Of a stretch of DNA of 27,161 nucleotides, positions 2,097 through 6,319 are shown one piece after another (within the stretch, counting starts at the first letter, position 1; every line of letters starts with the position of its first letter). The DNA comes from Schizochytrium sp. TIO01. Its lineage: Eukaryota; Protista; Bigyra: Labyrinthulomycetes. The stretch covers positions 115,795 through 142,955 of the forward strand of contig SMSO01000013.1 in NCBI GenBank assembly GCA_004764695.1. Direction: 5' to 3'. The notes beneath the pieces were generated by a model. It searched no databases and had not been told where the DNA came from. It saw only the letters and a list, made by a program, of their open reading frames with translations. A program made the translations under genes and the position numbers.

Positions 2097-2184
2097 ATGT
2101 CGGACCACCCACGTGTTGTCACTGCCCTTGAAAAGCTTCAGAATGGCGCTACAAGATTGAGGTAAGTTAACATCGTACTAGCTC

Positions 2185-2260
<76 letters not shown>

Positions 2261-5200
2261 TATTTGCACGGTGTTGCTTTTGTCGCTCTTGTTTTGCAAG
2301 TTTATGCAATCGCTTGTTTGTTTGTTTGGTTTGTTTGATGGATGGATGAGTTGTCTGTTTGAGTGAGTATACATCCTTCGAACAAAGAGCAAAATGACAA
2401 CACAACAAAGATAAATGCTGAAAGCCAACCTAGATCACTCACGTCGATGCATGCATACGTACATTTATTGTAATATGTAACGTGTAATGTATTGCTTGCC
2501 ATCATTCAATCAAATCGACAGTCTTGATTGCAACCATATCGGCTCAGAGGGCGCCAAGGCAGTGGCTGCGGCGCTGAAACAGAACCAGTCGCTGACATCA
2601 CTCAGGTAAGTTGTCTACGCAACACCGCAGCTCGTGGACTTGTTTGTACATGATGCTTGGTTTGTTATTTGGTGGGTGGGTCGGTGTTGTTTTGCAAGTT
2701 TATGCAATCTCTTATTTGTTTGATGGATGGATGAGTTGTCTGTTTGAGTGAATATACCTCCATCGAACAAAGAGCAAAATGACAACACAACAAAGATAAA
2801 TGCTGAAAGCCAACCTAGATTACTCACGTCCATGCATGCATGCGTGCATCTATTGTAACATGTAACGTGTAATGTATTGCTTGCCATCATTCAATCAAAT
2901 CGACAGTCTTGATGGCAACAATATCGGCGACGAGGGCGCCAAGGCAGTGGCTGCGGCGCTGAAACAGAACCAGTCGCTGACATCACTCAGGTAAGTTGTC
3001 TACGCAAGACCGCAGCTGGTGGACTTGTTTGTACATGATGCTTGGTTTGTTGTTTGGTGCGTCGGTCGGTGTTGTTTTGCAAGTTTATGCAATCGCTTGT
3101 TTGTTTGATGGATGGATGAGTCGTCTGTTTGACTGAGTATACATCCATCAAACGTACAGCAAAATGACAACACAACAAAGATAAATGCTGAAAGTTAACC
3201 TAGATCACTCACATCCATGCATGCATGCGTGCATCTGTTGTAATATGTAACGTGTAATGTATTGCTTGCCATCATTCAATCAAATCGACAGTCTTGATGG
3301 CAACTATATCGGCGACGAGGGCGCCGAGGCAGTGGGTGCGGCGCTGAAAGAGAACCAGTCGCTGACATCACTCAAGTAAGTTGTCTACGCAACACCGCAG
3401 CTGGTGGACTTGTTTGTACATGATGCCTGGTTTGTTGTTTGGTGGGTGAGTCGGTGTTGTTTTGCAAGTTTATGCAATCGCTTATTTGTTTGATTGATGG
3501 ATGAATTGTCTGTTTGAGTGAGTATACCTCCATCGAACAAAGAGCAAAATGACAACACAACAAAGATAAATGCTGAAAGCCAACCTAGATCACTCACGTC
3601 CATGCATGCATGCGTGCATCTATTGTAATATGTAATATGTAACGTGTAATGTATTGCTTGCCATCATTCAATCAAATCGACAGTCTTCAGGAGAACGATA
3701 TCGACGACGAGGGCGCGGAGGCAGTGGCTGCGGCGCTGAAAGAGAACCGGTCGCTGACGTCACTATCGTAAGTTGTCTACGCAACACCGCAGCTTGTGGA
3801 CTTGTTTGTACATGATGCTTGGTTTGTTGTTTGGTGGGTGGGTCGGTGCTGTTTTGCAAGTTTATGCAATCGCTTGTTTGTTTGATTGATGGATGAGTTG
3901 TCTGTTTGAGTGAGGACACATCCATCGAACAAAGAACAAAATGACAAGACAACAAAGATAAATGCTGAAAGCCAACCTAGATCACTCACGTCCATGCATG
4001 CATACGTGCATCTATTGTAACATGTAACGTGTAATGTATTGCTTGCCATCATTCCATCATTCAATCAAATCGACAGTCTTGATTGCAACGATATCGGCTC
4101 AGAGGGCGCCAAGGCAGTGGCTGCGACGCTGAAAGAGAACCGGTCGCTGACATCACTATCGTAAGTTGTCTACGCAACACCGCAGCTCGTGGACTTTTTG
4201 TACATGATGCTTGGTTTGTTGTTTGGTGGGTGGGTCGGTGTTGTTTTGCAAGTTTATGCAATCGCTTATTTGGTTGATGGATGGATGAGTTGTCTGTTTG
4301 AGTGAGTATACATCCATCGAACAAAGAACAAAATGACAACACAACAAAGATAAATGCTGAAAGCCAACCTAGATCACTCACGTCCATGCATGCATGCGTG
4401 CATCTATTGTAACATGTAACGTGTAATGTATTGCTTGCCATCATTCCATCATTCAATCAAATCGACAGTCTTGAAAGCAACGATATCGGCTCAGAGGGCG
4501 CCAAGGCAGTGGCTGCGGCGCTGAAAGAGAACCGGTCGCTGACATCACTCAAGTAAGTTGTCTACGCAACACCGCAGCTCGTGGACTTGTTTGTACATGA
4601 TGCCTGGTTTGTTGTTTGGTGGGTGGGTCGGTGCTGTTTTGCAAGTTTATACAATCGCTTGTTTGTTTGATGGATGGATGAGTTGTCTGTTTGAGTGAGT
4701 ACACATCCATCGAACAAAGAACAAAATGACAAGACAACAAAGATAAATGCTGAAAGCCAACCTAGATCACTCACGTCCATGCATGCATGCGTGCATCTAT
4801 TGTAATATGTAACATGTAATGTATTGCTTGCCATCATTCAATCAAATTGACAGTCTTGAAAGCAACTATATCGGCTACGAGGGCGCCAAGGCAGTGGCTG
4901 CGGCGCTGAAAGAGAATCAGTCGCTGGCATCACTATCGTAAGTTGTCTACGCAACACCGCAGCTCGTGGACTTTTTGTACATGATGCTTGGTTTGTTGTT
5001 TGGTGGGCGGGTCGGTGTTGTTTTGCAAGTTTATGCAATCGCTTATTTGGTTGATGGATGGATGAGTTGTCTGTTTGAGTGAGTATACATCCATCGAACA
5101 AAGAATAAAATGACAACACAACAAACATAAATGCTGAAAGCCAACCTAGATCACTCACGTCCATGCATGCATGCGTGCATCTATTGTAACATGTAACGTG

Positions 5201-6319
5201 TAATGTATTGCTTGCCATCATTCCATCATTCAATCAAATCGACAGTCTTGATGGCAACTATATCGACTCAGAGGGCGCCAAGGCAGTGGCTGCGGCGCTG
5301 AAAGAGAACCGGTCGCTGACATCACTCAAGTAAGTTGTCTACGCAACACCGCAGCTCGTGGACTTGTTTGTACATGATGCTTGGTTTGTTATTTGGTGGG
5401 TGAGTCGGTGTTGTTTTGCAAGTTTATGCAATCGCTTGTTTGTTTGATGGATGGATGAGTTGTCTGTTTGAGTGAGTACACATCCATCGAACAAAGAACA
5501 AAATGACAAGACAACAAAGATAAATGCTGAAAGCCAACCTAGATCACTCACGTCCATGCATGTATCCTATGTAATGCATTGCAATGTAATGTATTGCTTG
5601 CCATCATTGAATCATATCAACAGTCTTGTTGGGAAGGATATCGGCGACGAGGGCGGCAAGGCAGTGGCTGCGGCGCTGAAAGTGAACTGGTCGCTGACAT
5701 TACTTGAGTAAGTTGTTTAAGCAATAGCTCGTGTATTGGTTTGTACATAAGACTTGGTTGGTTGGTTGAGTCGTGGGTTGTCTACTGTGTTGTTTTGCCG
5801 ATGTTTTTCTTCGCGTCATTGCAAGTTTGTTGCGGAATTGTTTGTTTGGTTGATTGTGGATGTAACAAAGAACATGATAATATCAGAGAATAAATGAAAC
5901 TGTACTGGCAATACTGTGGGTGCCTTTTGATGATGTGAAATTGTTAACTGACGAACGGAGTTGATGTCATTTGGTTTTTACCGATCCTTAGAATGTCCGA
6001 TGGGTTGACGGATGGAATGTGTAAGGAGCTCGAGTTGAATAAGCAAGTTTGTTCTGCAAAGACAAGAAGGAAAATGCTTGAACAGATATCTCGTGAGCTT
6101 CGTTGTATACATGTTATAAACAATGTATTTAGTCTGCCGTTTTCAGTGAAGCGTAGTCTTCTTACACAAGCTTGGCCTGTTAACAGCTCGAATGAGCTGA
6201 GTTCGAAAGAGGATTATCTTTCTGCGCAGAAAGTAGAGCTTGATGGGCTGGAAGCTGCAAACGTTACCTTTCGTGGAGCATTGGGATGTCTAGGCCCTTA
6301 TATTTTGAATAAGTTCTAA
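2097..6319 (+). CDS. Spliced 11-exon gene encoding a 382-aa RI-like (NLRC3/CARMIL-type) leucine-rich repeat protein: short N-cap, 9 x 28-aa LRRs, ~109-aa C-terminal cap/unknown domain
   Basis: join(2097..2161,2522..2605,2907..2990,3292..3375,3684..3767,4077..4160,4469..4552,4854..4937,5246..5329,5624..5707,5992..6319) = 1149 nt with no internal stop. All introns are GTAAGT...AG and phase 2. Protein: MSDHPRVVTALEKLQNGATRL-SLDCNHIGSEGAKAVAAALKQNQSLTSL-SLDGNNIGDEGAKAVAAALKQNQSLTSL-SLDGNYIGDEGAEAVGAALKENQSLTSL-NLQENDIDDEGAEAVAAALKENRSLTSL-SLDCNDIGSEGAKAVAATLKENRSLTSL-SLESNDIGSEGAKAVAAALKENRSLTSL-NLESNYIGYEGAKAVAAALKENQSLASL-SLDGNYIDSEGAKAVAAALKENRSLTSL-NLVGKDIGDEGGKAVAAALKVNWSLTLL-EMSDGLTDGMCKELELNKQ...ILNKF*. 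The last exon is in frame with ORF 5993..6319. Confidence 0.92.
2185..2260 (+). repeat. (GCTT)19 microsatellite in intron 1 of the LRR gene
   Basis: Perfect tetranucleotide run. It explains the spurious KQAS-repeat ORFs on the minus strand. Confidence 0.97.
2290..5720 (+). repeat. Tandem array of ~9 exon+intron units (~378-393 bp period) forming the LRR region
   Basis: Exon starts at 2522, 2907, 3292, 3684, 4077, 4469, 4854, 5246 and 5624. Introns 2-9 are 301, 301, 308, 309, 308, 301, 308 and 294 nt and near-identical in sequence. Confidence 0.97.

Follow-up and report, generated by a model that had tools for sequence, protein, structure and literature searches.

Within a 27,161-nt stretch of the Schizochytrium sp. 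TIO01 genome (contig SMSO01000013.1, positions 115,795 to 142,955 of the forward strand; hereinafter designated the window, with positions counted from its first letter), the plus strand carries at 2097–6319 a gene composed of a short first exon, nine leucine-rich repeat (LRR) exons and a last exon. The gene sits in the spacer between the 5S and 18S ribosomal RNA (rRNA) genes, approximately 21 kb from a TTAGG telomere, and contains a 385-bp tandem unit present in 8.8 copies with 91% matches (2330–5724; Tandem Repeats Finder, TRF). Sequence reading and a pattern search show that each of the nine LRR exons is exactly 84 nt long, preceded by AG and followed by GTAAGT. A first-pass annotation of this stretch had proposed nine phase 2-2 exons that each encode a single 28-residue ribonuclease inhibitor (RI)-like LRR, and both the pattern search and matches to the Pfam family LRR_6 bear it out. 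The product falls into three parts: a head of 21 residues, nine RI-like LRRs (paralogues have 2–20) and a helical tail approximately 108 residues in length (the window gene and its paralogues of this design are hereinafter designated LRR-tail genes).

The start codon at 2097 is the first ATG 3′ of position 1991, where a putative 5′ untranslated region (UTR; 1991–2096, plus strand, as is the whole gene) begins; contigs of the public sequencing runs X2 and X8 span 1991–2111 and 2004–2114, respectively. Exon 1 (2097–2161) opens with the ATG, holds 21 codons plus 2 nt and ends in phase 2 at a GTAAGT donor, and because it is 65 nt long every intron of the gene is in phase 2. Intron 1 (2162–2521, 360 nt), the 3′ half of which is homologous to the repeat introns, also holds a (GCTT)20 microsatellite at 2181–2260. 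LRR exons 1 (2522–2605, 84 nt, phase 2-2), 2 (2907–2990) and 4 (3684–3767) match LRR_6 with E = 4e-4, 9e-5 and 2e-4, respectively. Exons 3 (3292–3375), 5 (4077–4160), 7 (4854–4937) and 8 (5246–5329) were located by the pattern search, which also found exon 6 (4469–4552), a module further marked by a contig joint and by the single-exon Pfam scan; exon 5 forms the donor side of the joint 4160→4469, and exon 7 the acceptor side of the joint 4160→4854. Exon 9 (5624–5707; pattern search) is a terminal-type module with V20, W22 and L26. Eight near-identical introns of 294–309 nt lie within 2606–5623, a range that also includes LRR exons 2–8. The last intron (5708–5991, 284 nt) is outside the repeat, with loose ends of X1 and X8 contigs at 5707 and 5992, and leads to the 328-nt last exon (5992–6319), which encodes the 108-residue helical C-terminal domain and ends with a TAA stop at 6317–6319. 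Contigs extend through a putative 3′ UTR (6320–6399), and the depth of X1 and X8 is approximately zero past 6366. Exon diversity among the window modules (0.12–0.13) is about twice the intron diversity (0.045–0.078), with the variable sites at exon nt 5–10, 14, 21–25 and 82–84; every codon variant listed in the first-pass annotation is present in the window exons.

To the Pfam scan we submitted five single LRR exons, exon 1 and the last exon. Four of the LRR exons match LRR_6 (PF13516) with E = 9e-5 to 5e-4, at 20–23 bits each, for a whole-protein cut-off of 23.4 bits, and the terminal-type exon 9 gives E = 0.19. A profile of 30 modules searched against the PDB retrieves RI-like LRR chains with E down to 1e-11, including axonemal LRR proteins, an 'RI-like protein', NOD2 and GALA proteins. 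The 28-residue consensus of the repeat is L-x-x-L-x-L-x-x-N-x-I-G-x-x-G-A. Neither exon 1 nor the C-terminal exon matches a Pfam family. Pfam detected neither NACHT nor NB-ARC in any of the exons scanned (exon 1, the five LRR exons and the last exon), 2097–6319 holds no additional long exon, and inspection of the head and the tail revealed no signal peptide or transmembrane segment. Assignment of the window gene to the ROCO class was rejected, as exon 1 and the last exon lack a Pfam match for Roc or COR. The first-pass statement that ROC and nucleotide-binding domains, signal peptide and transmembrane segment are absent therefore stands for the window gene (Pfam and inspection), but does not extend to the paralogue L045, which is built with the same cassettes and carries Roc-COR-TIR.

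The tail is modelled by AlphaFold2 (AF2) as three helices, with a predicted local distance difference test (pLDDT) score of 72. An ESM Atlas search returned no neighbour for it, a Foldseek search of the PDB gave no match at E ≤ 0.001, and the tail shows no similarity to the Roc-COR-TIR exon of L045. Two distantly related proteins in MMETSP/JGI data, P0002 (250 residues) and P0009 (267 residues), consist of uninterrupted, non-homogenised RI-like LRRs followed by the same tail, at 36–39% tail identity. The LRR-plus-tail architecture shared by these proteins is therefore older than the cassette family, and P0002 and P0009 may represent its ancestral architecture.

Evidence for transcription comes from contigs of four public runs (X1, X2, X8 and X19) over 1900–6500; the run types are guessed and expression levels cannot be read from them. 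Coverage in X1 and X8 falls on bins that contain exons and is zero or close to it in intron-only bins; X19 has a DNA-like pattern, with introns covered as well as exons. Splice joints and reads across the junction of exon 9 with the last exon occur only in X1, X2 and X8. The joint 2161→2530, connecting the exon 1 donor to a module, is found in these three runs and is absent from X19. The joint 4160→4469 (GT..AG; four X1 contigs and one X8 contig) removes exactly one intron, and the joint 4160→4854 (GT..AG; X1 and X8) reflects either exon skipping or a paralogue. The loose ends of X1 and X8 contigs at 5707 continue into the opening bases of the last exon, and at 5992 a loose end in X8 reads the final 17 bases of exon 9 of the window copy, which suggests expression of this copy itself. 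Four transcript-derived MMETSP proteins (P0001, P0005, P0010 and P0011) encode the tail at 70–85% identity, and in one of them, the paralogue P0005, a terminal-type module runs directly into the tail through the predicted split codon. A homologue search with P0005 retrieved three tail-only MMETSP open reading frames (ORFs), and length limits and clustering make the absence of a full-length model uninformative. The family is transcribed and spliced, with the contig joints in X1, X2 and X8 and the P0005 junction supplying the spliced transcripts that the first-pass annotation had called for as a check; for the window copy expression is suggested only, because its paralogues cross-map.

The genome contains at least 40 scored copies of the last exon, from 94 candidates, at 84–95% nucleotide identity. 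Most copies lie approximately 16–24 kb from contig ends or form convergent pairs within long contigs. The window gene thus belongs to a family with at least 40 members, most of them in the 5S–18S spacer of the ribosomal DNA (rDNA) units where the chromosomes of this Aurantiochytrium limacinum-type thraustochytrid end, and we are nearly certain that the family is real and its genes spliced. Family statistics were collected from the window gene and 20 extended loci (21 copies, 253 modules). All 253 modules are 84 nt long and follow an AG acceptor, and 248 are followed by a GTAAGT donor. None of the 253 contains an in-frame stop, whereas in the other two frames 121 and 252 modules contain stops. 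Intron length ranges from 261 to 690 nt across copies and exon length never varies. With a gapped search the number of intact modules is 253 of 254, the sole frameshifted module belonging to the copy L048 on a short contig, and a search of the long introns (341–690 nt) for hidden broken modules found this module only. It carries two 1-nt insertions in G runs, and this copy (contig C29) may be a pseudogene or an assembly error. Of 21 copies, 19 retain the 65-nt ATG exon 1, and the ORF of the last exon is uninterrupted in 29 of 30. In the copy L029 (C13:4020990) the tail is cut to 86 residues by a premature stop, which may likewise mark a pseudogene or an assembly error.

Gene copies differ in module number (2, 4, 7, 9, 11, 12, 14, 15, 18 or 20), in agreement with the variation in number and order among paralogues that the first-pass annotation had set as a test of a modular system. 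The symmetric phase-2 exons would allow modules to be added or removed without breaking the frame. Among the 253 modules, 169 distinct signatures are found at the repeat positions x2, x3, x5 and x8 (numbered from the leucine of x-L-x-x-N-x-I-G-x). The mean intron distance is similar within genes (0.062) and between genes (0.070), indicating that homogenisation is family-wide. Modules with the same signature, including those from different genes, have closer introns (0.043 versus 0.070, p = 1e-11), and x2 and x3 are strongly associated, both of which imply that whole units have been duplicated and moved between genes. W22 is present in 15 of 20 last modules and in 8 of 232 inner modules; since the last module keeps its own signature, array expansion is internal.

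The chromosomal setting identifies the array with a published object. In the window, a divergent 5S rRNA gene (1515–1633, minus strand; Rfam RF00001, 96.5 bits) is located 464 bp upstream of the start codon, and Rfam matches place the 18S, 5.8S and 28S rRNA genes at 10068–11853, 11942–12092 and 12242–15593, respectively. Of 15 paralogous loci tested, 10 likewise have a divergent 5S gene, approximately 430–580 bp upstream of exon 1. The ends of A. limacinum chromosomes have TTAGG telomeres, with 18S–28S transcribed toward the telomere and 5S away from it (bioRxiv 10.1101/2023.06.15.545109), and their 'Group 0' LORE-TEARS consist of about nine units of about 385 bp between 5S and 18S (Collier et al., 10.1101/2023.06.15.545109). 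The window array, 385 bp × 8.8 between the 5S gene at 1515–1633 and the 18S gene at 10068, fits this definition and is the same object in unit size, copy number, 5S–18S position and proximity to a TTAGG telomere. The preprint describes LORE-TEARS as spacers without GenBank similarity and with a possible role in chromosome-end maintenance (10.1101/2023.06.15.545109), whereas we find transcripts, LRR_6 matches and coding constraint. LRRs or leucine are nowhere mentioned in the preprint text (10.1101/2023.06.15.545109; the statement covers the preprint, not the journal version in Curr Biol 2023), and the term LORE-TEARS was found in no other paper of the literature searched. Published as non-coding, the 385-bp array of LORE-TEARS Group 0 consists of the exons and introns of an expressed family of LRR genes.

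Variation within the modules is concentrated at a few positions. Among 226 unique exons, entropy reaches 3.63 bits at x2 (19 residues seen), 3.23 bits at x3 (15 residues), 3.01 bits at x5 (12 residues), 1.53 bits at x8 (9 residues) and 2.37 bits at the split codon (11 residues), and does not exceed 0.95 bits at any other module position. The same concentration is seen in nucleotide diversity over 214 aligned units, which is 0.068 in introns, 0.060 in exon positions outside these five codons (scaffold) and 0.562 in the five codons themselves (face); 86% of face columns, versus 0.3% of intron columns, exceed a diversity of 0.4. Parsimony on an intron-based tree assigns 4.5 changes per site to introns, 5.0 to the scaffold, 5.7 to scaffold third positions and 63 to the face, although the tree is low in signal (7.4 changes per site with shuffled labels versus the real 4.5) and supports the rate ratio only. 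In the recently diverged pair L035/L036, introns differ by 0.36%, scaffold by 0.83% and face nucleotides by 2.98% (Fisher p = 0.001), and module pairs whose upstream introns are less than 1% different differ at 40% of face nucleotides.

The AF2 model of P0009 (pLDDT 77, and 83–89 over most LRR blocks) comprises six strand-helix units, in which the strand corresponds to (S/T)-L-x-L-x-x and the helix begins at the residue after I-G. On this model, the split codon, x2 and x3 are in the strand, x5 is in the strand-to-helix loop, and x8 is at the helix N-terminus. In RI-like LRR proteins the strand-plus-loop surface is the ligand-binding concave face, as established from ribonuclease inhibitor complexes. 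The suggestion of the first-pass annotation that the variable residues line this face is supported by the entropy profile and by the predicted model, which position the five sites on the strand and loop.

The reading that best accounts for these observations, to which we assign a probability of roughly 65%, is diversifying selection on a recognition surface acting against family-wide concerted evolution. The 84-nt phase-2 symmetric exon embedded in a 385-bp unit would permit crossing-over or conversion to add, delete and move modules with the frame intact. Unequal crossing-over and gene conversion would act both within arrays and between chromosome ends, and the same exchanges would homogenise introns and scaffold codons throughout the family. 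Selection for amino-acid diversity would keep hypervariable the five exposed positions per module, the x residues of x-L-x-x-N-x-I-G-x.

The contribution of selection was assessed by counting, with scaffold synonymous sites, introns and within-codon contrasts serving as neutral references. In scaffold codons the nonsynonymous rate (dN) is 0.045 and the synonymous rate (dS) 0.107, a ratio of 0.42. In face codons dN is approximately 1.0, and dS there is unreliable by the Nei-Gojobori method (NG86), being saturated and inflated by multi-step paths. Codon 5 carries the synonymous T>C change at its third base in 2 of 119 NAY codons, whereas codons with the amino-acid-changing T>A or T>G number 78. 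At codon 3, NNT accounts for 7 of 182 NNY codons, though the first base uses all four letters. Stops at codons 2, 3, 5 and 8 are absent, versus about 71 expected from base frequencies (about 41 without the dimorphic codon 8). These within-codon counts, in which amino-acid changes greatly outnumber synonymous ones, agree with the excess of amino-acid change that the first-pass annotation had noted at the variable sites. Together with the absence of stops, the within-codon contrasts favour selection on the encoded residues, and selection is probably the main cause of the hypervariability.

Several observations weigh against this reading. Exon nt 82 (e.g. 2603, 2988, 3373 and 3765), a synonymous third base of a leucine codon, has a diversity of 0.66 (C 84, A 56, T 86) and is nearly fully linked to nt 83, with A before T, C before A and T before G or C. 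Hypervariability ends within one nucleotide of the splice sites, where the adjacent intron is frozen: diversity is approximately 0 at intron +1 to +7 beside 0.5–0.7 at exon nt 82–84. Near-identical introns beside very different face codons are awkward for a process of point mutation plus selection alone. The C-terminal exon has a dN/dS of 0.85 among copies, almost neutral, and many copies could be weakly constrained. The mapping to the concave face comes from the predicted model of the relative P0009 and from general knowledge of RI-like LRRs. The family is known at the DNA and transcript level only; reads of paralogues cross-map to the window copy, and the runs consist of contigs whose RNA type is guessed.

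The first of these observations could be taken as the mark of targeted mutation or patch conversion, in which hypermutation or very short templated tracts would generate the face diversity and selection would only remove stops. Such a mechanism would suit patches of hypervariability only 3–6 nt long with sharp borders, an intron that is almost invariant from +1 to +7, a synonymous nt 82 that varies in linkage with nt 83, and module pairs in which 40% of face nucleotides differ despite an intron divergence of 0.5%. We nevertheless consider it unlikely. Synonymous third-base transitions are rare (2 of 119 and 7 of 182 at codons 5 and 3, respectively) where amino-acid-changing ones are common, and this contrast at the same base disfavours a base-blind hotspot. 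The invariant codons between the patches (N4, I6 and G7) are not raised in diversity, except for AAC/AAT, and neither a mechanism nor a template pool has been identified. Old residue classes shielded from homogenisation could explain the linkage of nt 82 and 83.

As to the product, the window gene most likely encodes an intracellular binding protein with a concave face that would differ from gene to gene. The genome contains 42 TIR_2 matches, mostly in ORFs of about 850 codons, and several of these lie 2–20 kb upstream of LRR-tail genes on the same strand (C35:2645484, C24:4063894, C36:4986847, C13:4010649 and C7:1033274). An LRR-Roc-COR-TIR gene followed by an LRR-tail gene may be a recurrent tandem pair. 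In L045 (3519–6330 on the minus strand of the locus; C24, approximately 4.06 Mb), exon 1 and three 84-nt cassettes are followed by an intron and an 840-residue exon that starts module-like and matches Roc (E = 5e-17), COR-A (E = 1e-10) and TIR_2 (E = 4e-12), and a 2-module LRR-tail gene is next to this ROCO-type gene, downstream on the same strand. The structure of L045 means that the same cassettes build LRR-Roc-COR-TIR proteins. This makes an immune-type role more likely for the family and is no proof for the window gene. The LRR-tail protein may act alongside the LRR-Roc-COR-TIR paralogues. A role in immune or non-self recognition, whether sensing of viruses or pathogens or allorecognition, is a tentative proposal to which we give slightly less than even odds.

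Variable LRR binders could instead serve outside defence, as nucleolar, rDNA or telomere adaptors, as axonemal or scaffold components, or in mating or developmental recognition. The embedding of the genes in rDNA units at chromosome ends fits such a role, as do the mostly axonemal or scaffold nature of the nearest solved RI-like LRR proteins and a helical tail lacking a known signalling fold. The odds of it nevertheless appear low: housekeeping LRR scaffolds are not known to combine family hypervariability limited to the binding face with variable repeat number, and in L045 these cassettes are joined to Roc-COR-TIR in an architecture linked to immune signalling.

The published reading of the array as a non-coding LORE-TEARS spacer for chromosome-end or rDNA maintenance, with the open frame incidental or a decaying relic, has in its favour the description in 10.1101/2023.06.15.545109 as lacking GenBank similarity, the dN/dS of 0.85 in the C-terminal exon, the one copy with a premature tail stop and the one frameshifted module, but is very improbable given 0 stops in 253 modules against 41–71 expected, codon-specific variation, strict exon length beside variable intron length, conserved splice sites, spliced transcripts and modules that match LRR_6. 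A structural role of the DNA could coexist with coding, not replace it.

The closest precedent for selection on a cassette-built recognition surface is the LRR-ROCO genes of Ectocarpus, in which each LRR is a 72-nt exon encoding 24 residues and concave-face positions are under positive selection (Zambounis et al. 2012, PMC3341825). These genes and the Ectocarpus NB-ARC-TPR genes, also with one repeat per exon, are candidate receptors (PMC3341825; Teng et al. 2024, PMC11378527). Common to the Ectocarpus LRR-ROCO genes and the present family are a stramenopile host, symmetric exons that each encode a single LRR, the gain, loss and shuffling of exons among paralogues, and an excess of amino-acid changes at concave-face positions, and the paralogue L045 has the LRR-Roc-COR order itself. 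By contrast, the exons described here are 84 nt long and in phase 2 and encode 28-residue RI-like LRRs, introns and scaffold codons are almost identical family-wide, and the genes lie inside subtelomeric rDNA units beside 5S. In addition, the window gene ends in a short helical domain rather than Roc-COR, and L045 adds TIR.

Fungal NOD-like receptors (NLRs), exemplified by the het-e, het-d and nwd genes of Podospora (PMC1805685, PMC2873952, PMC4986451), similarly possess near-identical tandem repeats subject to concerted evolution both inside and among paralogues, hypervariability under diversifying selection at a few binding-surface positions, and a variable repeat number. They differ in having WD40, ANK or TPR repeats in one exon with NACHT or NB-ARC, whereas the present genes have LRRs, one per exon, with homogenised introns, and the window gene has no NTPase domain. 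With lamprey variable lymphocyte receptors (VLRs) the family shares the LRR concave face as the variable recognition surface, and with the variant surface glycoprotein (VSG) and var families a subtelomeric location, where ectopic recombination is frequent. Unlike in VLRs, the germline genes are complete, with no sign of outside donor cassettes, somatic assembly or a secreted or surface product; unlike in VSG and var families, there is no sign of mono-allelic expression. RI-like LRR proteins at large (LRR_6; RI, the LRR domains of NLRs and axonemal proteins) have the same 28-residue consensus and alternate strand and helix, an alternation predicted here by the model of the relative P0009. Exons that match repeat units also occur in RNH1 and NLR genes. 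However, the genes for RI, NLRs and axonemal proteins are not known to form hypervariable multigene families built with cassette-like units.

Read in this way, published 'spacer repeats' carried by almost all chromosome ends in a model thraustochytrid become a large unannotated family with the hallmarks of a recognition repertoire, linked to Roc-COR-TIR proteins in a host with persistent mirusviruses. The one-LRR-per-exon design of brown algae is extended to a distant heterotrophic stramenopile and to another LRR class, with a much cleaner signal, and the family offers a tractable system in which concerted evolution and diversifying selection operate within a few nucleotides of each other. A further question is whether such genes are diversified or regulated by way of their subtelomeric position in the rDNA. 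A more speculative extension, which we hold to be doubtful, is that the rDNA unit of each chromosome end carries its own member of a germline repertoire of cassette-built LRR recognition proteins, subject to active, patch-specific renewal of the five contact codons through very short conversion tracts or targeted mutagenesis, to expression controlled by position (telomere or nucleolus) that makes cells use different members, or to both. If true, such a per-end repertoire would amount to a protist equivalent of the VLR-, VSG- or var-type variable systems, coupled to the Roc-COR-TIR paralogues.

The remainder of the window contains two further tandem arrays, of 412 bp × 4.9 (16575–18618) and 371 bp × 11.5 (20273–24492) by TRF, which match the published LORE-TEARS Groups 1 and 2 in position and unit size. 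A quick check of both arrays showed no coding sign, only short stop-free segments at 32–35% GC. The window ends in approximately 580 bp of TTAGG/TAAGG repeats; in this telomeric tract (26579–27161) the two units are mixed, with 89% matches to one 5-mer, and the TAAGG variants, compared with the TTAGG of the preprint, may be real or long-read errors. Elsewhere in the genome, Rfam matches place tRNA genes close to two LRR-tail genes (L031:6584–7126 and L036:7396–7466), no more than a few hundred bases from their 5′ sides. Two convergent LRR-tail genes, C31:3168309(+) and C31:3210358(−), lie 42 kb apart in a 9-Mb contig, with more copies at 5.73 and 9.02 Mb. This pair resembles two chromosome ends fused telomere to telomere, and some assembly contigs may concatenate chromosomes.

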